DNA of 64,000 nucleotides, from positions 62,001 through 126,000 of the forward strand of contig CDRNVI010000021.1 in NCBI GenBank assembly GCA_977017575.1, given 5' to 3'. The notes below the pieces were generated by a model, which saw nothing but the letters and a program-made list of their open reading frames with translations, had not been told where the DNA came from and searched no databases. A program made the translations under genes and the position numbers. Shown one piece after another: positions 1,971-42,563 of this stretch; the stretch's first letter is position 1; each line of letters starts with the position of its first letter. The DNA is from Paramoeba atlantica. Lineage: Eukaryota > Protista > Discosea.

Positions 1971-2404
1971 TAATAGTTCACGTTTTGAAATTTAGCCGAG
2001 GGGCGGCTATATATTTGCCTGCTGGCCCTTCGGGGCACATAATTTTCTCAAATTATGATGTAGTATTCTCTAATTGCATGGAGGGGGGTGTTTACTCGTT
2101 TGTTATATTCTTGTTAGGTTGTTATTTTGTTACGTTTAAAGTTTTGTGGGCAGGCTGGCCGAGTTTGTGGGCAGTTTTGAGGGCAGGCTGGCCGAGGGTT
2201 CCGGTGGGGGGGGAACCCCGTTAACAGAGTGACATTGATTGTGTTGTTTTATGCAGGCTTGTTTTTTTCCATCTTTGTGCGTGTGAAATGAATGAATGAT
2301 ATGTTGTGTCATTTTGAATTACGATTGAGCTATTCATAGTTGTTCATTTATTCATATATGTTATCAGTGTATATGTTTCCAGGGAGCCCCTCGGCGTGGA
2401 TTTC
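1971..2404 (+). mobile_element. 434-bp non-coding A-B mini-element of a YR retrotransposon (family A)
   Basis: Starts TAATAGTTCACG-TTTT-GAAATTTAGCCGAGGGGC, ends GCCCCTCGGCGTGGATTTC; no TSD; same termini as 40264-46914. Confidence 0.85.
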
Positions 2405-3630: not shown

Positions 3631-3883
3631 TCTGGATTGCTTGTTTTTATTTTTACTGTGTCTTGTTTGTCGTATATACTTAGGGGAGATTGAATTGCTA
3701 GTTTTGGGCTGAGAAAAAAGAAAAAGAAAATATACTTCTGTGGAAATAAAAAGAATTGCTAATTTGATTGCTTGTTTTAAATTCATATAAAAAAAAAAAA
3801 AAAAAAAACCTGCATGTGTACATTTCTGTTGTTCCGGAATCTTAATTATTACTCGTTGAGCATTGTTCCTGGTCGAGGCTTTC

Positions 3884-4097
3884 ATCCTGGCTTGAGCATT
3901 TGATCCTGGTTGAGCATTTGATCCTGGTTGAGCATTTGATCCTGGTTGAGCATTTGATCCTGGTTGAGCATTTAATCCTGGTTGAGCATTTGATCCTGGT
4001 TGAGCATTTAATCCTGGTTGAGCATTTAATCCTGGTTGAGCATTTAATCCTGGTTGAGCATTTGATCCTGGTTGAGCATTTAATCCTGGTTGAGCAT
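3884..4097. repeat. 18-bp tandem array, ~12 copies (ATCCTGGTTGAGCATTTR)
   Basis: Direct inspection; a single G/A variable position. Confidence 0.95.
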
Positions 4098-4312
4098 ATT
4101 TTGATGAACCCGATGTACGTTCCGCCACGTCGGATTTATTGAAAAGTTTAAGTGTTTTACTATTTTGTATATTCTTTCTGCTTTGTGAAGTCCAGTGTGT
4201 CATACGAAGAAGTCGAGATGTATCGACACTATAAGTACCTACTCGAGAGCCCCTAACTGGTCCACTAAAAAGGACTCAGTGTATTTGTTGTTGTTGTTGT
4301 TGTTATTGCTGA

Positions 4313-5050: not shown

Positions 5051-5240
5051 TAGAAGTCTACGAATAGAATTGTTCGAAGGATATCGAGTTTCCTGTAGGG
5101 TGGGGGGGGTGGCCCCACGGGGCACATGATATTCTCATATTATGATTTTTACTTAGTTAAATTGTCAGAGTTTAATCGTACATCAATTATTTATACTTTG
5201 GTAAAGGATAGAAGATTATATCCGTACGAAAATTTTTTTC

Positions 5241-5579
5241 CTATGCCTCAGTCGCCGCGAGAGACTCTATCACCACGCGAAACGCGTAGTCCATCGATCG
5301 TGCCAGAGAATCCGATGGGAAGCTCGGAAATGAGCATAATGAAATCAAGAGTGTGTGAAAAGCTTTTGCTGGCGAAGGATGTGGCACCGGTTCTGCACAT
5401 TAAAGCGGTATGGCAACGAAAAGACGCGTCGACTTCGGCAAAACGTACTTCGCATGGCAAGATTCGACGTGAAGGCATGGAAATGTGGGCCGTCTGGGAG
5501 GACGATCCCACGCGTGAGTACCCCTTTCCTCACAATGATCTGAATTACTTTCGTATTGACCTGGAAGAAGCCGAACCAC
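5241..5579 (+). CDS. gag-like ORF of element B, part 1
   Basis: MPQSPRE..YPFPHNDL.. homologous to gag 10460-11575; rejoins 8749 in frame (CCA C|AG TCC). Confidence 0.8.
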
Positions 5580-5774
5580 TAGAAGTCTACGCATGGAAAT
5601 TTAACCGAGGGGCTAATATCGGGTCAAATGCCCCGGAAGGGGGTTATAATTTTCATTGTTCTTTTCCCCGAAAGGGGGTTGTAATTGAATCATGTATAAA
5701 AGCTACAATATGTATTCTGAAAACTATATATAAAGGCCCTGCAAGCACAGGGGGGGCTAGAGCCCACGCGCCAA

Positions 5775-6326
5775 ATGCAGCCCGTCAACCCCATTCTTCT
5801 ACAAAAGCTACGCCGCCACTTGAATCCGAAGGAGAGCATGTGTTGCCTCCTATGCTGGAAGGCAGCGGCGCGTTGGACCGAGACCGCGGATTTAAGAAGA
5901 GAACAGTTCGTGAGTGTAACAAGCTGCGAAGTGATAATTTATTGGGGGAGGGGGACAAAGACCACACGCCTAAACCCTTTTCGACCACACCTTTACGCCA
6001 TTGTAACTGGGCCAGGAACGCCAGAACTCGCGCAGCATATCCAAAGCATGAACCCCGGGCAACGACTCTGTTACACGACAGTCCGCGAGATGGACCATCA
6101 AATACGATCAATACTCGGTCAGGGGTACGGGACGCACTCTATCAAAAGGGGGGCAATCACTCATCTGTTTCACGAAATCTCTCTCGGAAATTTGCGCATG
6201 CAGGAGGTTCAAAACCTAACAAAACACCAGAACATAGAATCACTGCTCAGATACAATGCAAACAGCGTTACAACGGCACGGGCCCTCGGGACACAACGAG
6301 TGTCTGCACTCCTTCCGGTACTTTAA
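5775..6326 (+). pseudogene. Tyrosine recombinase, C-terminal catalytic half (element C)
   Basis: ARW / TK / HSIKR / KH / LRY catalytic residues. Confidence 0.85.
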
Positions 6327-6329
6327 CAA

Positions 6330-7949
6330 CCTCTCATGTTACAAAGTGTTTTCACGAAGTCCCCTATCTCCGTAGGCACTCCGTTATATGTGCCCGCCGT
6401 AGCTCGCGGCTCGCTATACCGAAGGATATGAGTCTACCCCTCCATGTGAAAAAGTCAATCCCGGTGATTAAATTGGACAAAGTGAAGGAATGGTTAAATC
6501 CTGCGGCAGCCACACGTTTTCGCAAGGTACTAAATGAACTTTTATGGGTTCCTACAGGCCCGTACCCCGAGCCTTCGGTACGTGGTTCTTTGCCCGAGGA
6601 AGACATACGTCTACTAGAGGACGCCGGCGTTATAAGCAAGGTTTCGGGGAAGGACCTACTCAAAAGACCATCCATGCAATATATGATCCCCTTTACAGTG
6701 GTTGAAACCGACGATGAAGGTAATCAACGCCGCAGGTTTATATCCTGGACACGAGATGACAACAACAGGCTTTTAAATTATGAACCGGAAGTTGCGCTGT
6801 ATCACCCATCCAAATATCTACACAAAGCACATGATGCTATGGCAGTGAAGCGCGACTTCACTTGTGGTTTTTACCAAATTAGTATTCCATTGAAGGCACG
6901 GCCCAAGTTTAGATTTCGATCGAAGTTTTCGAGATGAACGTTCTTCCCATGGGTCATCGCTGCGCACCAGAAATCATGCACACTGTTACCGCCGCAATTG
7001 CCGGCGAGAGGTCGGTGTGTCAGGAGCGTTTCTAGTTTCACAGAGGTGCCACTGACGTTTACGTCGACGGAGTTCGTTTTTCGGGGACAGCGAACGATGC
7101 CGTCGAATACGCTCGCTTTATTGACGAGCGGTGTTCCAAAGCAAACGGCCTCTTTAAAGACGCCGGACAGCCCCCTGCTTTGAAGTATGTTTTCAATGGG
7201 GTGGCTTTCGACCACGACACTCATACGGTCGCCTGGGACCGAGACTGGTCAGTAAACTGCAAAAAGACAAATTTCATAAATTGTCTTTTGGTGATCTTGA
7301 GGCGGCGGTGGGGCGTCTTCTGTATGGATCTGCAGTCTTGCGGCTCAATATGCCACGCTTTTATTTCGCGATGAAAGTCGCGCAGCGTAGGATCAACTTA
7401 TTAAATCGCTGTCCGTATTTGATCGACAAGCCAGTTGATCTTCCGGTAGTTACTCGTTCTACACTTACCGAATGGCGAAATGAATTGATATGCAATCTTC
7501 CCCGACCCCCGCCTCCTCATCCTGACACCGTTCCTCACCACCACAAGTTATACACGGATGCTTCTGCGAAGGGATGGGGGGCCATCATTTACCTTGATTC
7601 TGGGGAGGTATTAATTACTGGTGAGGCATGGCCGAAAAATTTTAAGTATGAAGTGAATCGGGCCGAAGCGATGGCGGTCCGCTTAGCTATTAAAAAGTTT
7701 GCTATGCACTCCCCCAAAGGAACGTGCTTGGATATCTTCGTGGATAACACCTCCTGTAAGGCAGCGTTGAACAGGAGATTATCGAAGTCAGAAGGAGTGT
7801 CAAAGGAATTGAAAGAAATAATACGAGACACTGAGAAACGTGGGATTTGTGTCGAGGCGAGATATGTGTCTACGTTGAACAATCCGGCCGATCATATAAG
7901 TCGGGGTAAAGAAGTTGACATTAAACAGATTGAAAAGTATGTGATGTAA
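6330..7949 (+). pseudogene. RT-RNase H of element C (frameshifts near 6925 and 7240, TAG near 7032)
   Basis: RRRFISW, KRDFTCGFYQ, PMGHRCAPE, YVDG, LYTDAS..WG, NRAEA, FVDN, NPAD. Confidence 0.85.
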
Positions 7950-8748
7950 AGGGCACGATAATAGACCGGTCATCTATTATTGTGTTATCCTTCCCTAGTT
8001 ATTTTCGAAAAAAAAAAAATTACTGTGTGTTCGGGAAAATATTGTGACGTGTGTGTGGGCAGGTAGCCGCCGGGTTTGGCGGGTGCAACCCGCTAACATA
8101 GTGATATATTATAAATTTATATTGTTTGTTTTGAAAGGATCTATTTTGTCAAGATGATGTAGAAGCTACATACGTTTCAATTTGCTTTTCATGTATATGA
8201 TATGAATAGGTGAACTCATGTGAAAATAAATTATTATTTCATCTTTATAGTTATTTTCTTTTATGTCCTGTGCGGCCCCTCGGTGTGGATTTCTAGAAGT
8301 CTACGCATGGAAATTTAACCGAGGGGCTAATATCGGGTCAAATGCCCCGGAAGGGGGTTATAATTTTCATTGTTCTTTTCCCCGAAAGGGGGTTGTAATT
8401 GAATCATGTATAAAAGCTACAATATGTATTCTGAAAATTTACATATTTACTGATTACTTACTTGTAGAATCTTTTTCCTTTACGCGTTTTTTGTCCCACC
8501 CACCAAACCCCCATCCTATAGCCGCCGGGTTTGGCGGGTGCAACCCGCTAACATAGTGATATATTATAAATTTATATTGTTTGTTTTGAAAGGATCTATT
8601 TTGTCAAGATGATGTAGAAGCTACATACGTTTCAATTTGCTTTTCATGTATATGATATGAATAGGTGAACTCATGTGAAAATAAATTATTATTTCATCTT
8701 TATAGTTATTTTCTTTTATGTCCTGTGCGGCCCCTCGGTGTGGATTTC

Positions 8749-9458
8749 AGTCCTCGAATAATCTTCCGGAGACGCAGCCATTGGACGGCGGACGGCCCCT
8801 GCCTCCAAATCTGCAATCATTCGCATCAATGAATTCGTTAAAGTTAGACCCTTATGAACCTATTACTTGGCCAGCGTGGATCGATGCCCGTAATGATGAG
8901 GGATTTCGCATTCGTGATTTGATTCGGGAACTGAAGGAGGCACCGGAATATCGTTTGCGACTCAATCAATTCTTTCAGGATCGTTCATTTCAGAAACAGC
9001 AAGAGCGAAACTTCGACAATTTGCTAGGGAAATGGATTATGTTGGCGCGGGATACCCCAGGATGGTCTGAAGGTCCTTTCTTGGAGTTGGGTAAAGCAAT
9101 CGTTCAGAGTCTTCGAGACTCATATTGGCGAGCGTGCAAGGTAGATGTAGAGGCAGTCCACCAGAAGTTGGATAAAGAGGACAGATCACACGACAAATTT
9201 TATCAACACGTGTCGGATCAGTTATCCGATCGAGAGAAATTTCGTGCGCGCTACTCCGGATCAAATTATGTGAATCGAAGTTATCGTTCTTTTGGTCAGC
9301 CGAGACAAATGTATCCGAGTTATGCTTCTTCCAATGTGGGGCGCCCAGTGTGTTACAATTGCCGATCTCCTGATCATTTCTTGAAGGATTGTCCGTACAA
9401 AAGATCATCACCACCGGATTTTCGCCAGAGGGCGGCTGGCAGCGCCAAGACGTTATGA
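8749..9458 (+). CDS. gag-like ORF of element B, part 2, with CCHC knuckle
   Basis: LDPYEPITW..; CYNCRSPDHFLKDC (CX2CX4HX4C). Confidence 0.85.
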
Positions 9459-9529
9459 AACGCCCGTCCTTTAATCGCCAGTGTTCCGAATATAGAATAC
9501 CGGAGAATCGACGTAGGAACGAAAATTTC

Positions 9530-10262
9530 GCATCAAATGGTACCACAGACAGAGTTTTGAAACATCGCTACTTCTTCGACACTGCCTCCAAATCTATTGA
9601 TGAGCAAATTCAAACCACAAAAGCTCCGGTAGACGCGCGCAAGTCGAAGACTTCCACTCAGGAACGGCACGTCGCACTCCCTTTACTCAAGCAGCAAAAG
9701 GCCCGAAAACAAGCGTTGAAGTCCATAAAATTTGAGCAAAAGAAACTGTCAGAAGAGATTCGCAAAGATCCGCGACTCGACTCCATATTAAAACGGACAA
9801 CATCATCCTTTAGTCATCTACAGTCTTCTTCTGGTTACATTAATCCGTACCTCTTTCGATACGTAATTATGACTAGACTTGGGATCAAGCCTCCAACCTT
9901 AAATAACAAGATCGATTGCCCTGGATGTGCCGCCGAGGTTAGCTCTGCTCACATATTCCAACACATTGTCGGCTGTACTAAATGTAACGGAATGAACGCA
10001 ACCAAGAAACACTCATATCTCGTCAGGTTCCTTGCGTCCCTCTGCTCGAAAGCTGGTGTCCCCTGTGTAGTAGAACCGCGCTCACATTCTTCCTTCTACT
10101 GTACCAAATGTAAAGCTCACGTTTCCGAGGGAGAGATAGAAAAACATCCCTGCCGTGCCCGCAGAATCAGATCAGGCCCCGATCTAGGAATCATGTGGCC
10201 TCACATAGGTGAAGTGCTGTATGACATTACAGTCGTCCACACCGGAAGCCCAAGTTACCTAA
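9530..10262 (+). pseudogene. 5'-truncated CRE lineage 2 fragment (continues 15251-15546)
   Basis: CPGC..H..C, KKH, RSGPDL..YDITV; SYL|KMTEAQ restored when element D is removed. Confidence 0.85.
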
Positions 10263-10459
10263 TTAGAGTTTACGGAAAGAATTGCTTGAATAAAATATTT
10301 ATTCTTTGACCGTGGCCCTACGGGGCACATATACATATATGTACCTGATTTTGCCCCCTCCGGGGGGAATCATGTAATTATAATTTTAGCATACTATACT
10401 ATACATTATTTTACTCTAGTGACTTATAATCTTTTTCCACTCGCAAAAGGAAAGTTGCG

Positions 10460-11575
10460 ATGACACAACTCGAACTTCACTCTACCCGAAATTTACGGTC
10501 ATCGCGCAGTTCGTCTCCTGCAGTGCAACGGCCCGAGCCTACCGAGCCGTTGTCGCAGCAGGAGCTGAGTTTGGTGTGCACTGTTGCCCGAGAAAAACTG
10601 TTGAGTAGGGTGGCGGTCAATGTTAGGGCCAAATTTCGACGCAAGGACTCTTCTTCTGAGGCAATGCAAGTTGTGCAAGGTAAGATTCGAAAAGAAGGGA
10701 TTGAATTATGGGGTGTCTGGGATAATGAACCCTCAAAAGAGTATCCATTTCCGCACGCCGACTTGTACTATTACGACATTTCGATCATAGATGATCCTCC
10801 GGCGACTACGGGGCTAGAACAAGGGTCGACCGCCAATGGATTACGTACTAGTCAGAATTTCCCGGATGGTGGGGGGACAAACGAGGCTATTGTTAACGCT
10901 GATACTGTGGAAACTGGAATTCCTTTCGGACCGAGTGCCAATTTGGACCCTAACGGCCTGGATCCTTACGAGCCGATTACGTTCACCCCATGGATTAACG
11001 CCTTTGATGACGGGGGATTTCGCGTACGGGATTTGATGCGAGAACTGCGAGAAGCACCAGAATTTGGACTTCGCGTGAACCAGTTTTTCACCGACCGGAC
11101 TTTTCTGAAGCAACAAGAACGATTTTTTGAAAATGTTTTTTGCAAGTGGATTCTTTTTGCGCGGATGACTCAAGGTTGGGATCAGGGAGTTTACTTGGAA
11201 ATGGGAAAAGCAATCATTCAGACGATGCGCGATGCATATTGGCGAGCCCGGCGCATTGACGTGGATCTCGTGCATCAAAAATTGCAAAAAGACGTCCGTC
11301 CGAATGATAAGTTCTACCATCTTGTCAGTGAGCAATTAGTTGATCGCCAGAAGCAGTATGCCCGCCAAGTGGGATTTTCCGGATCAGGGGTCTTCCACTC
11401 AAAGGCAAGTTTTCAAGGAAATGCGCGCCAGAATTTTGTGCCTCAACAGCGAGCTCCTTTATTGTGTTATGGTTGTCGTTCCCCTGACCACATGTGGAGA
11501 AATTGTCCTAAACGGTTTCAGCAGGGTTTTCGTTCGAGGGTGGCTGGCCCTGCACAAGGCAGCAAGAACTTCTGA
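10460..11575 (+). CDS. gag-like protein with CCHC zinc knuckle (371 aa)
   Basis: CYGCRSPDHMWRNC; homologous to the gag of B. Confidence 0.85.
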   Translation: MTQLELHSTRNLRSSRSSSPAVQRPEPTEPLSQQELSLVCTVAREKLLSRVAVNVRAKFRRKDSSSEAMQVVQGKIRKEGIELWGVWDNEPSKEYPFPHADLYYYDISIIDDPPATTGLEQGSTANGLRTSQNFPDGGGTNEAIVNADTVETGIPFGPSANLDPNGLDPYEPITFTPWINAFDDGGFRVRDLMRELREAPEFGLRVNQFFTDRTFLKQQERFFENVFCKWILFARMTQGWDQGVYLEMGKAIIQTMRDAYWRARRIDVDLVHQKLQKDVRPNDKFYHLVSEQLVDRQKQYARQVGFSGSGVFHSKASFQGNARQNFVPQQRAPLLCYGCRSPDHMWRNCPKRFQQGFRSRVAGPAQGSKNF

Positions 11576-11641
11576 AACGTTCCCACCCGAACGGCCAGTA
11601 CTACAATAAATACCAACCGAAACCACAAACCTTTTACGCAA

Positions 11642-12709
11642 GTGAACAGTACAGTAACAGTTTTCAAAAGAAAAAGGATACAATTTATGCAAGTGACGAA
11701 GAAACGAAGGATGGAGAAGAATCACGTGGGTGTAGTGAGTGCAAAGAACTCAAGAGGAAGATATCTCAGATCTGGGACTTTATACGGCGGGACGCTAAGT
11801 TTGGAGCAGAAGGTGCCGGAAAGGCAGAAATTGATGAAGTTATTGCTGGGTGTGACAATAATGAGTCCCGAAATAAGGATGGCTCTCGATGCAATGGGGG
11901 CAATGTGGAGCGTTTCGACGTGGCGGGCACGGGCACGAATATGGGAGCGCCTGTCAGCCTTTTGCACGGGAAGGGGGATACGGATAACGGCGTTACACGC
12001 CGTGACTTTTCTTGCCAGTTTGCAGATAAGAATACAGGCGAAACTAACTTACGCCCGAACCCTCGCCTCGATATTAAACCTTGCAGGGGAAAATACGAAC
12101 CCGTTAAAATTCTACGTAAAATCTCTAATGGCGGAAGGAGCGACGGAACCATGCCGTCAAATGGAACCCCTGACGCAGCAGCACATTCAGAAATTGTGGA
12201 ACCACATGGCATCCCGCGAAAAACATACGCTGCTGCTGTGCTGGAAGGGGGCAAGCCGTTGGTCCGAAACGGCAGCGTTGACCAGAGAACGGTTTTACGA
12301 AGTCGCGTCCAACAGAATTGTAATTTGGTGGGGAAGGCATACGAAGACGTCCCGCCTAAACCCATATCGCCCATCCATGTATACCGTCATCGAGGGACCG
12401 GGCACGGAGGAGCTCGCAAGGTATGTAGCGCAACTAAAGCCTCTCCAACCGATGTCATGGGCTACAACTTCACAAGTGGATGTCGAGATAAGGAAAATTC
12501 TCGGATTGGGTTTCGGGTCACATTCGGCAAAGCGCGGGGCGATCACTCTTCTTCTCGCGGAGGTGGCAAACGGCAATCTAAATTTGGAGGAGGTCCAGCA
12601 TCTTGCAAAACATCAGAGCCTGGAATCTCTTCTGCGGTACAATGCCGATCCAGTGACGACTGCACTGGCACTGGGAACGCACAAAGCAACGCGCAAGTTG
12701 ACCATCTGA
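11642..12709 (+). CDS. Tyrosine recombinase (up to 355 aa; true start uncertain)
   Basis: SRW(R), TK(K), HSAKR(HxxR), KH, LRY(Y). Confidence 0.9.
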   Translation: MNSTVTVFKRKRIQFMQVTKKRRMEKNHVGVVSAKNSRGRYLRSGTLYGGTLSLEQKVPERQKLMKLLLGVTIMSPEIRMALDAMGAMWSVSTWRARARIWERLSAFCTGRGIRITALHAVTFLASLQIRIQAKLTYARTLASILNLAGENTNPLKFYVKSLMAEGATEPCRQMEPLTQQHIQKLWNHMASREKHTLLLCWKGASRWSETAALTRERFYEVASNRIVIWWGRHTKTSRLNPYRPSMYTVIEGPGTEELARYVAQLKPLQPMSWATTSQVDVEIRKILGLGFGSHSAKRGAITLLLAEVANGNLNLEEVQHLAKHQSLESLLRYNADPVTTALALGTHKATRKLTI

Positions 12710-14319
12710 TTACGGAAGACAATCTTTTTATCAAGTTTTTAGACGATATTCCTCAGGAGAAAGTTAAACACACGATTACTCGTACTCGACGAACATCGAA
12801 AGTGGCTCTTCCATCCGATTATAATCTTCCGTTGCACGTGAAATCCGGAATACCCGACATGCAGGTTAATACTCTCAGACGAATGATGAACAGCGAAGCA
12901 GAACGCCGATTCGCAGAAACATGGGATACACTTGTTCGGCTACCGTCTACACCGACGATAGAGCAGCGATTCAAATCCTTTTTACCCCCAGCTGATATAT
13001 CCGCTTTGTTGGAGACAGGAGTTATTTCACGGGTTGGATCCGAGGTAGTAAAGGCCAGACCTTCGATGGAGTGGGTGATTCCGTTCACGGTGGTGGAGCC
13101 AGCTGACGACGATTCGGAGCGACGTCGCTTTATAGCCTGGACCCGAGGCGATAACAATAGAATTCGCGAAGAGTACAAGCCTGAGGTTCCCGTTTGCCAT
13201 GCTGCATATTACCTTCATCGGGTTCGAGACCAATGTGCTATTAAGCGGGATTTAGCGTGCGGGTTTTGGCAGGTGAAGATACCGGTGGAATCACGACAAA
13301 AATTTCGCTTCCGTGACGAGGAGGGCACATTATACGAAATGAATGTTATGCCCATGGGGCATCGTTGTGCCCCCGAGATAATGCACACCCTTACGGCCAC
13401 CATTGGGGGTGACCCCCGATATTGTAATCGAGATGCGTCTTTTCCTGGAGGGGGTCTGGATGTTTACATTGACGGTATTCGTTTTGCGGGCGAGGTGTCT
13501 AAGGTGAATGGGTACGCGCGCTTCATTGATCGTCGTGCTATCAATGTCAATGCTAAGTTTAAGGATCATGGCGACCCGCCAATGGATGTTTATACCTTTA
13601 ATGGGGTTACCTTTTTTCACCGAGATGGAAAGGTTAGTCTAGGGCCTAAGTTGACGCGACGATTGCAAAGTGATGATTTCTTAGCGGGAACCTATGGCTC
13701 TTTGGAGGCAGGCGTTGGGAGGTTAATTTTTGCATCGGCCATCATGGGAATATGTATGCCAGAGTACCATTTGGAGTTGAAAATTGTTAGGCGCCGAATT
13801 TGTCGATTGAATCGCGAACCGAATTTACTTGATGATAAGGTCCCATTACCGACATCTGTCAGGATACGTTTGATGGCGTGGAGGGATAAATTGCTTTATC
13901 GTTCACCTGTTACACCGCCTCGCCACCCAGATACTGTTCCCCATCAACATACTTTGTTTACGGATGCGTCATCTGTAGGATGGGGGGCGGTCCTATATCT
14001 TGATTACGGACCCATGTTTTGCACTGGGGCGCAGTGGCTGGCGGATTTTAATTACGAGGTTAATAGAGCTGAAGCGCGGGCAGTTCGACTCGCCTTTGAG
14101 AAATTTCAAATTCACTTTAAGAAAGATACGTGTGTGGACTTGTTCATTGATAATACTTCGTGTGTGGCCGCTGTTAATAGAAAGGTTTCAAAATCAAACG
14201 GAATTACCGAGGAGCTTCGTCGTTTACTGCATTTTCTGAACAAGAACGGCTTAGCGGTTAAAGCAGAGTACGTACGATCATCCGAGAACCCAGCAGATCA
14301 TTACAGTCGATATTTTTGA
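11905..14319 (+). CDS. Reverse transcriptase-RNase H (804 aa, N-terminal third overlaps YR in another frame)
   Basis: RRRFIAW, KRDLACGFWQ, PMGHRCAPE, YIDG, FTDAS..WG, NRAEA, FIDN, NPAD. Confidence 0.92.
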   Translation: MERFDVAGTGTNMGAPVSLLHGKGDTDNGVTRRDFSCQFADKNTGETNLRPNPRLDIKPCRGKYEPVKILRKISNGGRSDGTMPSNGTPDAAAHSEIVEPHGIPRKTYAAAVLEGGKPLVRNGSVDQRTVLRSRVQQNCNLVGKAYEDVPPKPISPIHVYRHRGTGHGGARKVCSATKASPTDVMGYNFTSGCRDKENSRIGFRVTFGKARGDHSSSRGGGKRQSKFGGGPASCKTSEPGISSAVQCRSSDDCTGTGNAQSNAQVDHLITEDNLFIKFLDDIPQEKVKHTITRTRRTSKVALPSDYNLPLHVKSGIPDMQVNTLRRMMNSEAERRFAETWDTLVRLPSTPTIEQRFKSFLPPADISALLETGVISRVGSEVVKARPSMEWVIPFTVVEPADDDSERRRFIAWTRGDNNRIREEYKPEVPVCHAAYYLHRVRDQCAIKRDLACGFWQVKIPVESRQKFRFRDEEGTLYEMNVMPMGHRCAPEIMHTLTATIGGDPRYCNRDASFPGGGLDVYIDGIRFAGEVSKVNGYARFIDRRAINVNAKFKDHGDPPMDVYTFNGVTFFHRDGKVSLGPKLTRRLQSDDFLAGTYGSLEAGVGRLIFASAIMGICMPEYHLELKIVRRRICRLNREPNLLDDKVPLPTSVRIRLMAWRDKLLYRSPVTPPRHPDTVPHQHTLFTDASSVGWGAVLYLDYGPMFCTGAQWLADFNYEVNRAEARAVRLAFEKFQIHFKKDTCVDLFIDNTSCVAAVNRKVSKSNGITEELRRLLHFLNKNGLAVKAEYVRSSENPADHYSRYF

Positions 14320-15250
14320 ATGATGTTGTTTTCGAAGGATTGAATTACGCCATTTGTGAAAGCGCATATGATACGTATAGTAGATAAAAATAAGATATTG
14401 AGCGTTGAAAATCAAAAAAAAAAAAAAAAAAGGGAGACGTAAACTTCATGCAATCAATAACCAAGCAGAACGGACATGTGAGCGATTTTGATGTGTATGA
14501 GGAATGAGTGAGTGAGGAGACGAGATGACGAGGGGGGGGGCTCTCAGATAGTAGGCAATCTGGGGTTTCTTCTTCTTGCCGTCACTAGCGTTTGGGTGAT
14601 TTGAAGACTGGCGAGTGGGTGGTCCCCGCCGGGGAACTACCCATTCGCAAGAGAGAGAAAGTTTGAATATTGTTTTGTGGACGTCCATATATTTTTTGTT
14701 ATCATTATAGTCAGGATAGAAAAGTTGAAAGACATGTAGTTATTTAGTTTTATTTACTTGATGAATATTATTTACTTAGGACAATTCTTTATATATTTTG
14801 TACAAAGATTTTATGATGAGCAATTCTTAGAGTTTACGGAAAGAATTGCTTGAATAAAATATTTATTCTTTGACCGTGGCCCTACGGGGCACATATACAT
14901 ATATGTACCTGATTTTGCCCCCTCCGGGGGGAATCATGTAATTATAATTTTAGCATACTATACTATACATTATTTTACTCTAGTGACTTATAATCTTGTT
15001 CCACTCGCAAAAGGAAAGTTGCCCCACCCGCCATCCCCCAAACCACTCCCCGCCGGGGAACTACCCATTCGCAAGAGAGAGAAAGTTTGAATATTGTTTT
15101 GTGGACGTCCATATATTTTTTGTTATCATTATAGTCAGGATAGAAAAGTTGAAAGACATGTAGTTATTTAGTTTTATTTACTTGATGAATATTATTTACT
15201 TAGGACAATTCTTTATATATTTTGTACAAAGATTTTATGATGAGCAATTC

Positions 15251-15546
15251 AAATGACAGAAGCACAACTGCTGCAAAATGCTATTGAAAGGAAAAAGAAA
15301 AAGTATGTTTACTCTGGCGGAATAGAAGATGATTATTTTAAATGCATTCCAATGACCGAGAGTGGTTTTCTTCATGAAAATACACGAAAAATAATAACAG
15401 CTTTAGCGAAGAAAGCAAATCTGAATGTGAAAGAAGTAGTAGAGGCTTTTCAACTAGAGATTGAAAAGCTGAATGCGTACACGATTGTCACGCAATTACG
15501 CGACAGCCTACCAAAGGCCGCATGGCTAGGTTCTATCAATTCGTAG
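15251..15546 (+). pseudogene. C-terminal end of the CRE fragment split by element D
   Basis: KMTEAQLLQNAIERKK.. matches the 28922-29401 copy. Confidence 0.85.
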
Positions 15547-15819
15547 ACCTACACAGCTGAAAGTTTTGATTGATTGATTGATCGATTGATGTAAACTTGA
15601 AAGAGTAATTTTGGTTCCGTCATAGTCAGATGACCAAGTAAAAAAATGTATTTGATAGTTTACGAGAGGAAATTTAGACGAGAACAAATACGAATTTGAA
15701 AAGACTCCTTTTTCTCGAATGGCCCTACGAGGCACATAATCTCTGAATATATCTAAATATAATTCGTCATCAAATGTATAATTAGTATATACCACAGAAG
15801 TCCATAGTATACAAAAATA

Positions 15820-16168
15820 TCGGGAGAAGCTGAATGAAAGCGACTGCATGTATTGGACTTAGATGTATCTTTTTCCACGTGCAAAAGGTCCTGAACCTTT
15901 CCCAAAGCCTTGCCCTTGAATCCCACGTTGATGTGCTCCACATTGAGGCCATCCCATCCAAGGCCACTCTGACTTCGTGAGTGATCGTACTCACCCCCAT
16001 CAACAGGCTTAGCAGGTTTCTCCTGCCTGATTGCGCCGACTCCAAACTTAACGTTCCCTGATATAATTTTCCAGATGAAATTAATCTCCCGTCGTAGCTC
16101 CGCGCATTGACTACATTCTGTGCTGTCGTCTTTCTTCGTTTGCTGTGCGGAGCTTCGATCTGCGATGA
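15820..16168 (-). pseudogene. Inverted N-terminal half of the element B tyrosine recombinase
   Basis: GKLYQGTLSLE..ALDGMASMWSTSTW..LWERF aligns to the D YR N-terminus but lies on the opposite strand. Confidence 0.8.
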
Positions 16169-16856
16169 AATTCCTCCGCAAACGAAAATAACGTACGCTC
16201 GAGCAATAATGGCACTGTTCAACCTAATCGGAGAGAGCACTGTACCAATAAAGTTTTTCTGCAAAGCGCTACAAGCCGAGGGTGCGGAGGAGCCGAAACA
16301 CCAAATGGAACCACTAACACCATACCTCTTGAACAAGCTACGAAAGAATCTGACTCAATCGGAAAGCATGACAATGCTACTGTGCTGGAAAGCTGCCTCC
16401 CGCTGGACCGAGACAGCAAATTTAACGACAGAAAGATTCGTACAGGTGACCTCGCAAAGAATAGTAATCGCCTGGGGCAGAGGAACAAAGGCGTCGCGTT
16501 GCAACCAGTGGCGACCATCAATGTACACAGTAATTCTTGGGGAAGGCACTCCGGAGCTTGCCCAATACGTTCATACGCTCAAGTCGTGGAACACAATGTG
16601 CCGAACGAACGTACGACAGATGGATCGAAATATCAAGCAAACGCTCGGTCAAGCTTTTGGGACACATTCAGCCAGGAGAGGGGCGGTCACGGAGCTGTTC
16701 AAACAGGTCGCAAATGGGAAGGTCACAATCGACGAACTGAAGAATCTGGCAAAACACCAACAGATAGAATCCCTCCTCCGGTACAATTCAGATCCCGTCA
16801 CTACCGCGCTCGCTCTTGGAACTGGGAAAGCGACAATGCATCTGAAAACGTTGTGA
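16169..16856 (+). pseudogene. C-terminal half of the element B tyrosine recombinase
   Basis: KITYAR..SRW..TK..HSARR..KH..LRY. Confidence 0.88.
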
Positions 16857-18502
16857 GCTCCGAAAATTTATTTCGCCAGTACTTGCGCGATATGCCGCAA
16901 GAGAAGAGCCGCTACACCATTGTGCGTATCCGACGCACCACAAAGCTCGCTATGCATGATGATCTCAAACTACCATTACATGTGAAGAAAGTGAAAGTGT
17001 TGAATATGAACGAAGTTCGGAATATGATGAACGGGGCAGCATCTGCCCGATTTTGTGAGACGCTAAACACCCTCTTTAAGTTGGAAAAAAATGAAGATGA
17101 ATCGCCAAAATTTGCACCTACTTTACCGGAAAAAGATATCAAAGAGTTGGAAGATGCAAATATTATTAGTAAAGTATCACCGGACGAAGAAAACAAACGC
17201 CCCACCAATCAGTGGGTGATACCCTTTACGGTTATTGAACCCGCGGATGAAACTGGAGTTGAAAAGCGCCGCAGATTTATAGCGTGGACTCGAGAGGACA
17301 ATAAGAGACTCAAAGAAGATTACATACCTTACGTTCCCTTAAAGCACGCTGCTTTCTATTTGCATCGAGCGAAAGAGCCGTACGGGCTGAAGCGCGACTT
17401 ATCATGTGGTTTTTATCAGGTGAGTGTGCCGGAGCAGGCACGGGCAAAGTTTAGATTTCGAGGAAGCAATGGAGACCTATATGAACTAAAAGTTATGCCG
17501 ATGGGGCATAGGTGTGCCCCGGAAATCATGCACACAATTACATCAACATTGGCCGGGGATCCGCATTATTGCAGCGAGAGTTCCGCGTATGATGGAGCCT
17601 TTAAAGCTGACGTCTATGTTGATGGAGTAAGGTACGCGGGAGGGGAAGAAGAGGCGAGCGCGTATAAACAATTCATTGACTCTCGAGCTGGCAGCGTTAA
17701 TGCAACTTTCAAGGACGAGGGCACGGATCCTATGACGAACTATGTTTTCAATGGAGTGGAGTTTTGTCACGAAAAGGGTAAGGTAAAAATGGGACCAAAG
17801 ATAATTCAGCGAATGAAAGAGGATAGATTTCGTTATGCTACTTTTGAGCAACTTGAATCAGCAGTGGGACGACTCGTGCACGCATCCTCAGTTCTGGGTG
17901 AACCGATAACAAACTACCATTTTCCCCTAAAATTGGTTCGCAGACGTATCAATGCGCTCAACAACAAACCTGAACTACACAACGTACGGGTACCGCTCCC
18001 TCCGTATGTAACTTTGGCATTGACGGAATGGAAGAATAAGATATGCTTAAATAATCCAGTAACACCCCCTCCTCATCCGGATACAGTTCCACACCGCCAC
18101 ACCTTATACACGGATGCTTCGTCGACGGGATGGGGAGCAATATTGTACCTCGACTACGGGCAAGTAGTTTGTGTGGGGGATCGCTGGGAGGAGAACTTCG
18201 CGTACGAAGTGAACAAAGCAGAGACGAGGGCCGTTCGTCTCGCTTTCGAGCGTTTGGTACATCACTTCCACCGAGGAACTTGTGTGGACCTTTTCATCGA
18301 TAACACATCGTGTTTAGCATCAATTAAAAAGAAATCAACAAACTCAGACGGAATTCATTTTGAACTGAAGCCATTGCTGCAATTCTTAAGAAAGCAGGGA
18401 ATTACCGTACAGCCGGAATACATTTCATCAAAATTGAATCCCGCAGATCCAATCAGTCGACAACAGGTCCAGAGCAGTGCGAAAGGGAAAATTTGTGACT
18501 AG
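16382..18502 (+). CDS. RT-RNase H of element B (706 aa open)
   Basis: Same motifs as the D RT; YVDG. Confidence 0.9.
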   Translation: MLESCLPLDRDSKFNDRKIRTGDLAKNSNRLGQRNKGVALQPVATINVHSNSWGRHSGACPIRSYAQVVEHNVPNERTTDGSKYQANARSSFWDTFSQERGGHGAVQTGRKWEGHNRRTEESGKTPTDRIPPPVQFRSRHYRARSWNWESDNASENVVSSENLFRQYLRDMPQEKSRYTIVRIRRTTKLAMHDDLKLPLHVKKVKVLNMNEVRNMMNGAASARFCETLNTLFKLEKNEDESPKFAPTLPEKDIKELEDANIISKVSPDEENKRPTNQWVIPFTVIEPADETGVEKRRRFIAWTREDNKRLKEDYIPYVPLKHAAFYLHRAKEPYGLKRDLSCGFYQVSVPEQARAKFRFRGSNGDLYELKVMPMGHRCAPEIMHTITSTLAGDPHYCSESSAYDGAFKADVYVDGVRYAGGEEEASAYKQFIDSRAGSVNATFKDEGTDPMTNYVFNGVEFCHEKGKVKMGPKIIQRMKEDRFRYATFEQLESAVGRLVHASSVLGEPITNYHFPLKLVRRRINALNNKPELHNVRVPLPPYVTLALTEWKNKICLNNPVTPPPHPDTVPHRHTLYTDASSTGWGAILYLDYGQVVCVGDRWEENFAYEVNKAETRAVRLAFERLVHHFHRGTCVDLFIDNTSCLASIKKKSTNSDGIHFELKPLLQFLRKQGITVQPEYISSKLNPADPISRQQVQSSAKGKICD

Positions 18503-19246
18503 CGAAAGGGTGGTCCCCGCGTGGACACCCGTTCGCGACAGGGAGAGATAATGCATCTCTCGGTGAGTGAATGTTATAGTATTATTAGTTTGTTCAAATT
18601 GGTTTCTACGGATAGTTTCAAATTCAATTGTAAAATAAAAGAGTGCAGAGATGTACATAGGATATCGTTAAAACAAATTATCAATATACATTATGTAGAC
18701 TGAAGTTCACCTTTTCGTACAATATATTTTATAGTTTCTTTATGTTGTGCAGGGGCTCACCCGGAGGGCAATTCTAGAAGTCTACGAATAGAATTGTTCG
18801 AAGGATATCGAGTTTCCTGTAGGGTGGGGGGGTGGCCCCACGGGGCACATGATATTCTCATATTATGATTTTTACTTAGTTAAATTGTCAGAGTTTAATC
18901 GTACATCAATTATTTATACTTTGGTAAAGGATAGAAGATTATATCCGTACGAAAATTTTGTCCCGCCCACCAACCCCCAAACCACTCCCCGCGTGGACAC
19001 CCGTTCGCGACAGGGAGAGATAATGCATCTCTCGGTGAGTGAATGTTATAGTATTATTAGTTTGTTCAAATTGGTTTCTACGGATAGTTTCAAATTCAAT
19101 TGTAAAATAAAAGAGTGCAGAGATGTACATAGGATATCGTTAAAACAAATTATCAATATACATTATGTAGACTGAAGTTCACCTTTTCGTACAATATATT
19201 TTATAGTTTCTTTATGTTGTGCAGGGGCTCACCCGGAGGGCAATTC

Positions 19247-22219
19247 CAAGCCAAGCGACGGAGACAATGGACCCTCTGGTTTTATCTACCTTCCTCCATC
19301 TGCAAAAGTGAAAATTTGGTCCATTAAGGCACTGTGTCTAAATAAAGTAAAAAGCGTCGATGTGTCAATGGAAAACACTGGAAATTCAGAGAACAAGGAG
19401 GAGCGAGGCATTGAGGGAACATCTGATTTGGAACCGCTGCCAAAGATGGCACAAATTGATCCAACGTTTGCCGTCCATGTAATCGCGATTTTTCGTTCCA
19501 TTATTAAAGCGTACCCGAAGGCTCAGACAGAAGCAGAAAGAACTGTTATCTGGCACAAACTCCTCGATACACCACGGGACTCTTTGGCCACAATCCGTCT
19601 AAACTACCTACGTCGCCAGAGCTCCGTACAGCGTCGAGGGAGACGTGAGTGGGAAACTATCGATACGAACATTACCGAGGAAGAACGACTTGTACAAGAA
19701 GTAGACAAACGATCAATTCGAAATGCATTGCAAGCAGCAAAGGCAGGAAATCTTGGAAAAGCTACCCGCATACTCGACAATGTTTACAAGGACTCTGCTC
19801 TTCCACTCTGGGAAAAGATTGACAAACTTCGAGATCTACACCCCAAAGGCCCTACACCTCAAACTTCTGATCGAGACTTCCCGCGAATTGCGATATTGGA
19901 ACCTTCTGAACTTCGTCTAGCGACTGAAAAATTGTCAAAAGGTGCAGCTCCTGGCCCGACAGGTCTGAGTGAAAGCATGATGCGAATTTTAGTGGAGGAC
20001 GAAGAATCCTGCCTTTCACTCTGCCACATGCTGAGAGACGTCATAAATGGGGAAGTTGCGAAAAGTGTCCGAGTAAGATTAACACGATGCAGAATGATAG
20101 CCCTTGCAAAACCGAACAATGGAATACGACCGGTTGCAATGGGGGAAACGCTGCTAAAAATTTGCGGTTGTATCCTCCTTGAGCGCCATGCGAACTCCTT
20201 GTCAGACATATTCCAACCGATCCAAAGAGGCATATTACAAAAGAATGCATGTGAGTCCATTGTACATGAACTTTTGGAAGAGCATGAAGCTGGAGCCACA
20301 ATTTTGACGATTGATTTCAAGAATGCATACAATACGCCACAACGTACGGCAATAGAAGAAGCGCTCCTTCAATACCCGGTATTCAAACACTTTATGCGAA
20401 TGTTCTATTTTGAATATGGTCAACCATCGGAACTTTTATTTTTCGCCAACGACTCATTACATTCCGTGATCGAAAGCTCGTCTGGGGTCCGTCAAGGATC
20501 AGCACTCTCTTCGGTTTATTTTTGCGCACTGCTACAAGGTCCTTTGAAAGAAATTGCGAAGCTCTATCCAGAGGTTACTATCAGAGCCTACCAGGACGAT
20601 GTGACGATGAGCTCCAAAAATGAGTCGTCTTTGGAAGTTGCGTTCCTTCACCTCAAAGAACTAGCAAGTGGTCTGAATCTTGAAATTAATTCCCGTAAAT
20701 GCGAAGTATTCCAAGGCAACAGTTCAACGAATAATCGAGGGATGGATCTCAAGGAACTTGGGGTGGAAGACTGTGTGGATTCCATCAAGGTCCTAGGAGC
20801 ATACATCGGGCATAATAAAGCCGTTGAACGAAAGCTCTTGGAGAAGTTAGGGAAACATAAATGTTTATTTCGAAGACTTCGCGCTATGGGTCCCAGCAAC
20901 TTGTCACTAGCGATTCTCAAGCGATGTACCGTACCCCGTCATGATTACCACCTTCGAGTCCACAAACCTGGAGCTTCGTTTCTTCTTGCCCAGGTGTTCG
21001 ACGAGGAAATCCATGAGATCTTAAAGAAATGGTGTGGTGCAGATAGTGAAGCACTTAAACTCTCTGCCCTCCCATGTAAAATGGGAGGTCTAGGAATCAC
21101 CTCAACCGTTCTAAAGCAACGCTACTTTTTCGAAGCGTCCCTAAAATCTATTGATGAGCGATCAAAACCCATTAATGCTCCGGTAGATAAGGGAGGCAAG
21201 AAACAAGCCGACAGCACACGAACGAATTCACAAGCTGCACGCACTCAGCTAAGAAAGAGCATGAAGAATGAACACGAGAAGACAGCAGCAGAATTGAATG
21301 CAATACCGAGATTCCAAAATATCATAAAGCGAACGAAGGAGGCGAACAATCACTTAGATTCAACGTGCAACTACGTAAATCCATATCTTTTTCGTTACAC
21401 TCTAATGATGCGCCTAGGAATTGCTCTAAGTAAAGATTAATCCGTAAAGATTACGAATTGGTTACGAATTTTCATTAACTGAAAGAAGAAATGATGTTTT
21501 ATTTTATTATATTAAAGTTTAAACGTATGCGTCTGGCATACTCCAAATTCCTAAGTAATGTGTCAGGCGAGATTATATGCCCTGGATGTGGAACAATCGA
21601 AACATCAAGCAAAATCATTCCTCACGTAGCGGGATGTTCACGATGTGCTGGCATGAATTGCACGAGAAAACATTCTCATTTGGTACGCTATATTGCCGAA
21701 ATGTGTTCCAAAGCTGGTCTTCCATGTGCGATCGAACCTCGTATTCATGCGTCCTTTTTTTGCACCAAATGCAAGTGCTCAATTTCCCCAGAAGCGGCGG
21801 AATACCATCCTTGCCGAGCGCGTCGAATTAGATCTGGCCCAGACCTAGCGATTATGTGGCCAGATGTTGGAGAAATTTTATACGACGTTACCGTGGTACA
21901 TACGTGCTGCAGCAGCTATGCAAAGCAGAGCAGCAATGCCCTGCTGCAGAGTGCGGAAGAGCGGAAGATAGCAAAATATGTCAAAGAAAAAGGTCTTGAT
22001 CCAGAATGCTTTCGCTGCATAGCTGTGACAGATTGTGGAGTACTACATGAAGAGACAAAAGTTTTGCTGAAAACATTGGCGAAAAGAAATGATGTTGATT
22101 ACAAGATTGTACGAGAAGCTTTTCAACTTGAACTGGTAAAATATTCAGCCTATGCAGTCGTCTCTCAATTGCGCCAATATATAGAAACCGAGAAATGGGT
22201 AGGAGGACTCCGTCTTTAA
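19247..22219 (+). pseudogene. CRE lineage 2 copy a, RT + CCHC + REL (interrupted near 21430-21530)
   Basis: RPVAMGE, IDFKNAYN, GVRQGSALS, AYQDD, CPGC, RSGPDL..YDVTV. Confidence 0.88.
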
Positions 22220-28730: not shown

Positions 28731-28921
28731 GTGTATAAACGAGGGGTGTATAAACAGGGGATGGGGGAATATGCTTGGGAAAGGACGTGCAATACCCCCC
28801 ATCCACAAAAATTAGAACTTCAGTTATAGTATCCTAAATTTCATATCGTAAACTCATATTTCGCATTTCTGAAACACCAACAAAAAAGATTATCACGCAA
28901 ACTTGTGTCCTATCGTCCTTT

Positions 28922-35347: not shown

Positions 35348-35549
35348 AACAGGTCATCTCATATTACAAGATGTTATTATTACAAGATTTTATCATTACA
35401 AAGATCACTATCAGATTACAACCAAACATTAAATGATTGAGATACAGTTTATTTCTGTTATATCGCTCGCGTAGCTTATGGACTATTATTATTAGTTTAC
35501 GTGATGAAATTTAGACGAGTATATTATAAGATTTTAAAAAAAAAAAAAT

Positions 35550-37457
35550 TTGCATCGAGTTGACGACGCTATTGGAGTGAAAAGAGATTTAAGCTGTGGA
35601 TTCTATCAAGTACCACTTCCTCTAGCTGCGCGTTGTAAATTTCGCTTTTCATCAAAAGGCCGTACTTATGAAATGAACGTTCTTCCGATGGGGCATAGGT
35701 GTGCCCCAGAAATCATGCATACGATAACTTCCGCCCTTGGGGGACTTATCACAGTGTGTAGCGCTAAATCTGCTTTTACACGAGGAGCTATGGATGTGTA
35801 CGTTGATGGAGTTCGGTTTTCGGGAACTGTGGAACAAGCGCAGGAGTACGCACGCTTTGTGGATAAACGGTGCGATGAGATGGGAGGAAAATTCAAGGAG
35901 AAAGGTCATGAGCCGACACAGCACTATGTATTTAATGGAGTTCATTACGATCACGTCAATCACAAGGTCAGCCTGGGACCACGTGTGGTGCGTAAGTTGC
36001 AGAATGACAGATTTTACTCGTTAAGCTTCAAAGATCTGGAGGCGGCGGTGGGGCGCCTTCTGTACGCATCTGCTGTGCTTGGTATAGTCATTCCGCGATT
36101 TCATTTCGCTGTCAAGATTGTTCAGCGACGAATTAATTTGTTGAATCGATGTCCGTGGATAGGTAATAAGTCTGTTGACCTTCCACGAAAAACACGTATT
36201 ATTTTGGCACAATGGAGGGATGAGGTAGTATTAAATACTCCGATTAAAGCTCCACTTCATCCAGATTTCGTTCCTCACAAACATCGTCTTTACACAGATG
36301 CTTCTCGCAAAGGGTGGGGAGGGATTCTGTATCTGGATACAGGAGAGGTTTTGATAACAGGCAAGCCATGGGAAGCCGGAACAACGTATGAAGTAAACAA
36401 TGCTGAAGCTACGGCTGTAAGGTTGGCTCTTGAAGAATTCGGTGAGCATTTTGAAAGCGGAACGTGCCTGGATCTTTTTGTGGACAACACTTCATGTAAA
36501 GAGGCACTGAATAGGAAAACTTCTAAGTCGGACAATATTGCACGTCAATTGCGCATGGTTTTAGAGGAAGCGAAAAGGAAAGGGATATGCATTCAGGCAC
36601 GTTACATTGCCTCGTCAGAGAATCCAGCAGACCCGATTAGCAGGAAATTTTAGCCTGGGACTTAGGAGAAGTTCCCCAAGGAATATCACGAGTGCTCGGG
36701 TAGTGTTAAATGTGACTAGTGATCGGGTTGGTTGGCTGCGGGTTGCGCGGACGGGCATTCCCGTTCACAACGTTATTAGTTTATTTGGTACTCTTTTAGC
36801 ATTGATTATGATAGGTTATGACGATCTCACTTAGTCTCTTGGGTTTATTTCCATAAATACACTACAGGAAAGATATATCTTCGTAAGATCATTGAGAAAT
36901 CAGCAGTCTTCAAATTTCTTATTATTGCTTCCATATATTTTTATATACTAGTTCTACTAGATGTTTTATGAGCAGCCCGACCTGGATTTCTATAAGTTTA
37001 CGATTTGAAATTCAGGAGGGCAAACATTATGCTCCATACTGTTGTAGTTTTGGGCTTAGGAATATTATTCGAATTATATCACCGTTTTTTCTAATCATGA
37101 ACAATTTGACATATACACAATTATTTGACTATTTTAGAGACTATTTTCATCCGAACGTTACCACTAGTTTTTGTGCCCACCCACCAGCCCCCAACCATTT
37201 GGCTGCGGGTTGCGCGGACGGGCATTCCCGTTCACAACGTTATTAGTTTATTTGGTACTCTTTTAGCATTGATTATGATAGGTTATGACGATCTCACTTA
37301 GTCTCTTGGGTTTATTTCCATATATACACTACAGGAAAGATATATCTTCGTAAGATCATTGAGAAATCAGCAGTCTTCAAATTTCTTATTATTGCTTCCA
37401 TATATTTTTATATACTAGTTCTACTAGATGTTTTATGAGCAGCCCGACCTGGATTTC
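35550..37457 (+). mobile_element. 3' part of VIPER-like element family E: RT/RH (35550-36653), B1 36732-36990, A2 36991-37157, B2 37199-37457
   Basis: YVDG RT, RNase H motifs, B1-A2-B2 repeats. Confidence 0.88.
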
Positions 37458-40079: not shown

Positions 40080-40342
40080 TTCGATGAAGCACATTGAAAG
40101 TGTACACTTTCAATGAATCTTCATCGAAGGTGTTTTTGACTTTTTTTTTATTTTTTCAAATCTTCACGCAAACGTTTTTCGCGGATCCATATAGACATTT
40201 TGACTTTTTTGGTGCTTCATCGAAGTGTTTTGTGAAGGCTCGTAGAGGAATTTCACCGTTTCTTAATAGTCCACGTTTTGAAATTTAGCCGAGGGGCTGT
40301 TATGTATTTGCCTGCTGGCCCTTCGGGGCACATAGTTTCTTC

Positions 40343-42519: not shown

Positions 42520-42563
42520 GGGACAGGATCACCAAATACAAAAAAAAAGACAAGAAAAAAAAA

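Follow-up and report, generated by a model that had tools for sequence, protein, structure and literature searches.

A palindrome of fixed spacing with covarying arms at the B-A junction of VIPER-like retrotransposons, a candidate attachment site

Where does the recombinase of a VIPER-like retrotransposon act, and what does its site look like? Next to nothing is known of how DIRS, Ngaro, PAT and VIPER elements integrate; none of them has a defined recombination site, and their tyrosine recombinases (YRs) are untested as to specificity (PMC7192593). The question is raised by a 64,000-nucleotide stretch of the Paramoeba atlantica assembly GCA_977017575.1 (contig CDRNVI010000021.1, positions 62,001 to 126,000, forward strand), here called the window. 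It is a nest of retroelements, and the host genome employs spliced leaders. Several of its elements are VIPER-like, with a gag-like open reading frame (ORF), a YR plus an ORF for reverse transcriptase/RNase H (RT/RNase H). The original prediction had described a hairpin of fixed geometry where the B and A repeats of these elements meet, and had read it as a folded attachment (att) site of the YR. The junction is a genuine feature with solid statistical backing, and it is conserved across Kinetoplastea. As judged from the sequences, this module is probably, by a modest balance of the evidence, the conserved cis-acting core of the circle junction and an att-type site of the element's own recombinase.

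The elements carry split direct repeats in the order A1-[ORFs]-B1-A2-B2, and the repeat pairs are 99-100% identical. Elements B, C, D and E are located in the window, and related contigs contain a further eight. For VIPER, PMC6681497 reports split direct repeats and identifies SIRE with the A2-B2 region. Element D has ORFs at 10460-11575, 11642-12709 and 11905-14319, in the order gag-like, YR, RT/RNase H (RVT_1 and RT_RNaseH matches, tblastn mapping). With this ORF order, the split repeats and a VIPER-homologous YR with its catalytic motifs, the elements are VIPER-like YR retrotransposons of the DIRS order. According to the circle model of such elements, as PMC6681497 and PMC7192593 cite it from Poulter and Goodwin (2005), only a cut at the meeting point of B and A yields the A1...B2 permutation. 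The intact site is carried by the internal B1-A2 copy.

The design can be followed in the B1-A2 junction of family C (8275-8327, plus strand). An outer stem (8275-8284 with 8318-8327) leads through an internal loop to inner arms (8289-8293 and 8310-8314) which enclose a 16-nt core (8294-8309), and the element boundary falls between 8293 and 8294. In family D (14819-14850, plus strand) the arms AGCAATTC and GAATTGCT form a perfect 8-bp match around the core at 14827-14842. In family B (18766-18799, plus strand) the arms GGGCAATTC and GAATTGTTC form six Watson-Crick pairs, two G-T pairs and one G-C pair, with the core at 18775-18790. Family E (36975-37021, plus strand) has a 10-bp arm with one G-T pair, an outer stem GCCC/GGGC and its core at 36991-37006. 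The family A junction can be rebuilt from the A start and B end of a mini-element at 1971-2404, and it has C-G where family C has T-A, the compensatory change that had been claimed for it. On re-reading, the sequence of 8275-8330 was exactly as first quoted, and the other four quoted junctions (2404/1971, 14826, 18774 and 36990) and the A1-ORFs-B1A2B2 anatomy were likewise correct.

Thirteen families have both arms, five of them in the window and eight in contigs of the same or a closely related organism; the latter come from one long-read assembly (ERZ24900291), in which families were identified by their repeats. The core and right arm are also seen in about nine additional A starts that lack an available B end. 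The consensus is a B end A(T/A)TTC followed by the A start T-N3-AGT-N2-ACG-N4 (16 nt) and then GAA(A/T)T. Fifteen positions are invariant in the 13 families (-5, -3 to +1, +5 to +7, +10 to +12, +17 to +19 and +21), and positions -4 and +20 covary, being either T-A or A-T. The flanks are nearly devoid of information, its content dropping to noise outside about -13 to +30. An invariant island is thus embedded in otherwise unalignable repeats. That the A and B repeats do not align outside the junction is true in general, but the A starts of several families align over about 35 nt, so that part of the similarity reflects common descent under selection rather than independent design. The constant length of the loop, a point on which the original prediction was exposed, held: the spacer is 16 nt in 13/13 families.

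Two details of the original description needed amendment. The octamer AGTYYACG occurs 15 times against 5.9 expected, a number reached in 0/100 shuffles; family I and the A start at L093:480, however, carry AGTATACG, and the motif is therefore better written AGT-N2-ACG. The junction had also been ascribed to all families. It is common to the YR-encoding clade, but a second split-repeat clade (42559-46209) is without the motif. Matches to the core pattern in viral (7) and metagenome (74) collections had no protein homology and arms of at most 6 bp, and were judged to be due to chance. A scan of metagenome contigs with the recombinase profile found no relatives.

Pairing of the arms extends over about 8 bp and includes compensatory changes. 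Pairs 1 to 5 are always Watson-Crick in the ungapped register, pair 6 is G-T, C-G or A-T, and pairs 7 and 8 are mostly paired. T1-A16 and N2-N15 pair frequently too; the unpaired loop may consequently be about 12 nt, and the boundary, which does fall at the inner edge of the left arm as proposed, may sit 2 bp within the stem instead of at the stem/loop edge. In a nine-family alignment a 12-pair helix is 86% paired, compared with 73% in column shuffles (0/500) and at most 51% in slid registers. Covariation had been named as a check on the original prediction, and on this alignment it is significant, with a score of 0.366 compared to 0.172 (0/500 shuffles) and five pairs that vary on both sides. 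RNAalifold independently predicts the same helix. When right arms are swapped between families, complementarity proves stronger within families (p < 1e-4); with the inner 5-6 bp removed, most of this signal is contributed by the ATTTC-type families (A, C, E and H).

In these four families, plus G and K, an asymmetric internal loop is followed by a GC-rich outer stem with compensatory changes. Its pairs 1, 2 and 7 are C-G, G-C and C-G in family A and T-A, G-C and C-G in family C; family H has T-G at pair 1 and C-G at pair 2, and family G has T-A at pairs 2 and 7. The outer stems of AATTC-type families are no better than the cross-family background.

Trypanosomatid junctions, taken from the supplementary sequences of PMC6681497, have the same geometry. 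The junction of Trypanosoma cruzi VIPER reads, in succession, GATTATTC, TAGGAGCTTGTGAAAA and GAATGATC. Eight contiguous pairs, one of them T-G, form there only at a spacer of exactly 16, and with further outer stems the RNA fold reaches -27.1 kcal/mol (z = -3.8). In Crithidia fasciculata the junction of CfaC1_21 reads AGATTTTTC, TGAGAACCTGTGATAG and GAAAAAT, with seven pairs at spacer 16; an A/T run also gives six pairs at spacer 15. Two other copies, CfaC1_27 and CfaC1_21:236683, have atypical repeat layouts which could not be interpreted by eye. Kept in both species are TTC/T (the slash marking the boundary), AG at +5/+6, G at +12 and GAA at +17. The octamers AGTYYACG and AGTATACG, the five variants seen here, are absent from the set of complete published VIPER copies and at chance level elsewhere. 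It follows that the geometry is conserved while the core sequence differs (A-R-C-Y-T-G-T-G).

What happens at the boundary can be read from the ends of inserted copies. T+1 is retained in 21/22 A1 copies, preceded by C no more often than chance would give; the 16 B2 ends have C-1 as their last base, and T follows them at about the rate expected by chance. Because A1 starts at T+1 and B2 ends at C-1, both ends map to one phosphodiester, that of TTC/T. No target duplication is found at the element ends and no second, shifted class of ends is seen. A classical stagger of 6-8 bp would leave either a duplication of the overlap or two classes of ends offset by it. The lack of both suggests that only one strand's joint is inherited, as when replication follows the exchange of a single strand. 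Microhomology of 1-5 nt with the target, spanning -3 to +3, occurs in a few insertions: TTCTA in L091, TAG in L092 together with a pseudo-site (GGCATTTA compared with GGCAATTC), and TTC at 40343.

The enzyme presumed to act at the junction is the YR encoded by element D (11642-12709, plus strand), which has the motifs ASRWSETAALT, HSAKRG and LLRY. In the published alignment these are matched in T. cruzi VIPER by ASRWSEIAALT, HSIKRG and RYLG, with ASRWSE-AALT common to both. Matches to Phage_integrase were weak, and a profile built on the YR found 707 relatives, including proteins of the kinetoplastid Papus ankaliazontas.

An att site is the most likely explanation, given the exact boundary, the invariant island, the covarying arms, the encoded YR with catalytic motifs, the gag-YR-RT/RNase H order and the geometry kept in T. 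cruzi. The recombinase would bind the arms and cut one strand at TTC/T. The cut strand would then be joined to a target with little or no need for homology, and the joint would be fixed by replication or repair. Such a course would account for the mapping of both ends to a single phosphodiester, with neither duplications nor a shifted class of ends. The recombinase may encounter the site in normal duplex form, in the form of a cruciform, or folded into a stem-loop in single-stranded cDNA.

Several points weigh against an att site. The 16 bp between the arms misfit the 6-8 bp geometry of known YR core sites, and the conserved spacer does not share the symmetry of the arms. The same core is retained by families with YRs only about 50% identical, which would be unusual if the YR alone read it. 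A T. cruzi copy (supplement 10 of PMC6681497) has TATTC between the annotated B1 end and A2 start; these bases are part of the left arm and yet lie outside both annotated termini, which the simple model does not predict. They reflect either approximate trimming by the authors or bases exclusive to the internal junction. Finally, the link of recombinase to junction is drawn from sequence.

If an att site is accepted, the question remains of folded strand or duplex, on which the evidence is about even. The original prediction preferred a site defined by its structure, comparable to integron attC. The fixed-geometry, covarying palindrome that it placed at the circle-junction equivalent is borne out. 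A two-box stem, with inner and outer parts separated by an internal loop, is found in families A, C, E, G, H and K and in T. cruzi; an attC-like form of it is clear only for the ATTTC type and T. cruzi, and it is not universal. The G-T pairs, which had been taken as a mark of single-strand folding, failed the cross-family and slid-register controls: G-T exceeds A-C by 18:2 in the stems themselves, but by 170:36 (about 4.7:1) in cross-family pairings, and slid registers are similar. Both arms are rich in G and T, and the excess matches the local base composition and does not clearly exceed this background; as proof of folding of the top strand it was rejected. The strand comparison of DNA folds was also set aside, since the top strand folds better by 0.3-2.2 kcal/mol in 11/11 families but the shuffle z-scores are alike for both strands. 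AATTC-type hairpins are weak as DNA (-3 to -8 kcal/mol), and the overall fold z-scores of these families range from -0.2 to -2.3.

In favor of folding are the 16-nt spacing, which is irreconcilable with known duplex core sites, the single-point joints, and the precedent of DIRS-1, which has single-stranded antisense cDNA intermediates (PMC7192593). Moreover, the outer stems covary with internal loops of unequal size, which would misalign binding sites in a duplex and hence favors the folded form. Against it, in addition to the limited spread of the attC-like two-box stem, are the position of the boundary on the loop side and not at the stem base, the conversion of conserved G-T pairs to A-C mismatches on antisense cDNA, and the fact that covarying inverted arms are equally expected of protein-binding sites in duplex DNA. 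The specific proposal that the B-A junction folds in the cDNA, that the YR cuts at TTC/T, and that one strand is exchanged with a near-arbitrary target before replication completes the insertion is put forward as tentative.

The main, and a serious, alternative to an att site is a role at the level of RNA. The hairpin at B1-A2, the sole intact copy in the transcript, would direct reverse transcription or packaging; it could act in initiation, strand transfer or as a stop, RT would set the cDNA ends at T+1 and C-1, and the YR would merely act on the resulting junction. We consider this possible but somewhat doubtful. As RNA the junctions fold at -11 to -35 kcal/mol and 10/11 minimum-energy folds include the junction hairpin, whose outer stems in families A, C, H and G combine asymmetric internal loops with compensatory changes. 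The conserved core lies right after the B end, as a primer-binding site lies after U5, and the priming of reverse transcription in DIRS-type elements is unknown (PMC7192593). Additional hairpins with UUCG- or GNRA-type tetraloops occur in the A repeats.

Other properties are at odds with such a role. A partner of the core for self-priming or kissing was sought, and no consistent complement was found elsewhere in the elements, which leaves self-priming unsupported. The core does not start with TGG, as the complement of a tRNA 3' end would need, and no tRNA genes are present in the window; a tRNA primer was therefore rejected. No Rfam family or known ribozyme was matched: in a search of the whole window against Rfam 15 nothing reached the gathering score, and the C and D junctions and A repeats gave only noise (E of at least 0.5). 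By inspection, pairing at the A start does not fit a hammerhead register (UH/ ... GAAA). The strictly fixed spacing of 16 nt is more typical of protein-DNA geometry, and there is no strand bias beyond base composition. One RNA-labelled run had no match to 14500-19300. The hairpins of the A repeats are of interest in themselves. GC hairpins with UUCG-, UACG- or GNRA-type loops are found at 2025-2040, 8345-8360, 8379-8395, 15723-15737 and L090:~9905, examples being GGCCC-TTCG-GGGC, GCCCC-GGAA-GGGGG and CCCC-GAAA-GGGG, and they suggest structured RNA in the 5' leader.

A signal for RNA processing is improbable. The pyrimidine tract of the B end and the invariant AG at +5/+6 would form a spliced-leader acceptor coupled to upstream polyadenylation, the palindrome being secondary. 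Pyrimidine tracts do lie 25-75 nt upstream of the junction here, in T. cruzi and in C. fasciculata, the AG is invariant and the genome uses spliced leaders. Vazquez and colleagues are said to have described the SIRE of T. cruzi in 1994 as a source of trans-splice acceptors. An acceptor, however, covers a small part of the conservation and leaves T+1, T+7, ACG, the arms, the fixed spacing and the covariation unexplained, and in C. fasciculata other AGs intervene between tract and core. A likeness of the core to the spliced-leader exon was considered and found not compelling, only AGTTT being common to the two. Pyrimidine-rich tracts lie 25-70 nt upstream of every junction (8225-8270, 14780-14800, 18745-18760 and 36940-36965) and are candidate trans-splice acceptors in their own right.

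Least probable is the absence of any function, the palindrome being due to chance or its arms regenerated mechanically in each cycle by snap-back copying: short A/T-rich palindromes are common and the fold z-scores of AATTC-type junctions are weak, but the invariant island, the covariation and the partner-swap tests contradict it, T. cruzi keeps the geometry, and the arms of chance matches never extend. The same G-T pairs and mismatches also persist between copies of a family (family B of the window and L092), which argues against arms recopied from each other.

The junctions described above lie in a succession of insertions three deep. A family B element (5051-19246, plus strand; A1 core 5051-5066, B2 end 19246) is the older, and nested within it are element C (5580-8748, plus strand; A1 core 5580-5595, B2 end 8748), which lies within the gag of B, and farther downstream the complete element D (10263-15250, plus strand; A1 core 10263-10278, B2 end 15250). 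Both insertions are base-precise, and by tblastn the gag of B resumes directly after element C. The empty-site form of the family B insertion is present in DNA contigs, where the left flank of 5051 is joined to 19247. DNA contigs also end precisely at 14827, 15653 and 18775. The segment encoding YR residues 16-129 is inverted (15817-16173) beside the remaining gene (16107-16844, plus strand) and adjoins a truncated A start of family G at 15653. This inversion within the family B element is real, since the joint of opposite strands at 15817/16174 is seen in three DNA runs.

The window also holds solo elements and isolated A starts. A family A solo A-B mini-element (1971-2404, plus strand) has its A start core at 1971-1986, right arm at 1987-2004 and B end at 2386-2404. 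One of family E (40343-40774, plus strand) lies within a family A A-repeat fragment (40264-40338), and the TTC at its joint is 3 nt common with the target. These two and the A-B mini-element at L007:1601-2020 are about 430 bp long, are found at unrelated loci and have exact element ends; they correspond to SIRE in T. cruzi. They could be solo repeats, or integrated mini-circles formed when the YR resolves a full circle at its two identical junctions. Family G is represented at 15653-15682 (plus strand) by an A start with core and right arm; its B is absent from the window, but the B end and full junction are found at L094:11153 and also, as a loose end, among the DNA contigs. At 35490-35519 (plus strand) the core and right arm of a G-like family head a 5'-deleted element, and those of a further family (28829-28858) are on the minus strand.

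The second split-repeat clade is represented at 42559-46209 and, on the minus strand, at L005:11712-16629. Its RT/RNase H is only about 24% identical, and the AGT-N2-ACG core is lacking. A search of these copies for YR homology detected none, and for this reason the clade is not counted as an independent test of the junction design. In the L005 copy, 7-bp inverted arms, GAATTAT and ATAATTC, nevertheless flank a spacer of 15 nt, and the boundary falls where the left arm meets this spacer. A distant relative of the recombinase in L002/L003 has no split repeats and is uninformative with respect to the junction.

Rearranged forms were seen in several contigs. In L089 the junction of a family H element is itself split by a 3.4-kb insertion (10087-13553), which separates the B1 end precisely from the A2 start; the A1 of this element is without its first two bases (GG in place of TA). 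L004:267-10697 is a tandem array of about five copies of a 2086-bp unit with 99.7% identity, including YR-coding sequence. A 1.5-kb element at L090:13847-15366 consists of A, a short internal part and a single B with no A2-B2, the form expected from recombination of B1 with B2 or from an integrated circle with one junction. The chimeric 3' end at L007:4612-5069, in which the A2 of family J4 is followed by the B of family A, suggests recombination or template switching between families. In the window an 18-nt tandem repeat (TTGAGCATTTGATCCTGG) runs for about 15 copies at 3838-4133.

What is new is the non-canonical, previously undescribed architecture of the junction; the circle junction of YR retrotransposons was itself known. 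In the searchable literature on split-repeat elements no description was found of a junction palindrome with fixed 16-nt spacing and a conserved core. With its invariant positions, its fixed spacing and the compensatory variants that occur naturally, the junction is a tangible candidate site, about 35 nt long, which is also present in the VIPER/SIRE elements of T. cruzi and allows duplex, folded DNA and RNA substrates to be compared directly. It also supplies an easy marker by which the ends of VIPER-like elements, and of their SIRE-like mini-elements, can be annotated in kinetoplastid genomes. A folded att site, if that is what it is, would be the counterpart in eukaryotic retroelements of integron attC and CTX-phage integration, one conserved from free-living kinetoplastids to Trypanosoma cruzi.

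With respect to known systems, the split-repeat YR retrotransposons (VIPER/SIRE, Ngaro and PAT) and DIRS-1's internal complementary region (ICR) likewise rely on an internal copy of the circle junction which restores the termini. The ICR is experimentally essential (PMC7192593). It differs from the present junction in that it is a complementary splint for inverted repeats and not a hairpin-like site. Classical duplex core sites such as loxP, FRT, dif and the lambda core have, like the junction, inverted arms around a central region, and cleavage at the border of arm and spacer matches the position of the boundary. Their arms are conserved and their spacer is 6-8 bp, whereas here the spacer is 16 bp and itself conserved, and no second, staggered cut is evident. 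The overlap and staggered cuts of that class are not seen in these elements, the spacing being 16 nt in 13/13 families, in T. cruzi and in C. fasciculata, and the original statement that the spacing is unlike that of classical YR sites is borne out.

In integron attC and CTX-phage attP(+) one strand exchange is resolved by replication, the joints are precise and need little homology, and the site is recognized by its structure. These sites have two binding boxes along a stem and are cleaved in the basal box. The junction, in contrast, has a single arm pair closing a loop of 12-16 nt, with the boundary on the loop side; a second, outer stem is found in some families, and folding is predicted. 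The junction of retroviral 2-LTR circles is also a palindrome, formed by the meeting of both ends of an element after reverse transcription. In that case the inverted repeats lie strictly at the termini, and a DDE integrase reads them on linear DNA, while here the right arm lies 16 nt inside the element and the enzyme is presumably a tyrosine recombinase.
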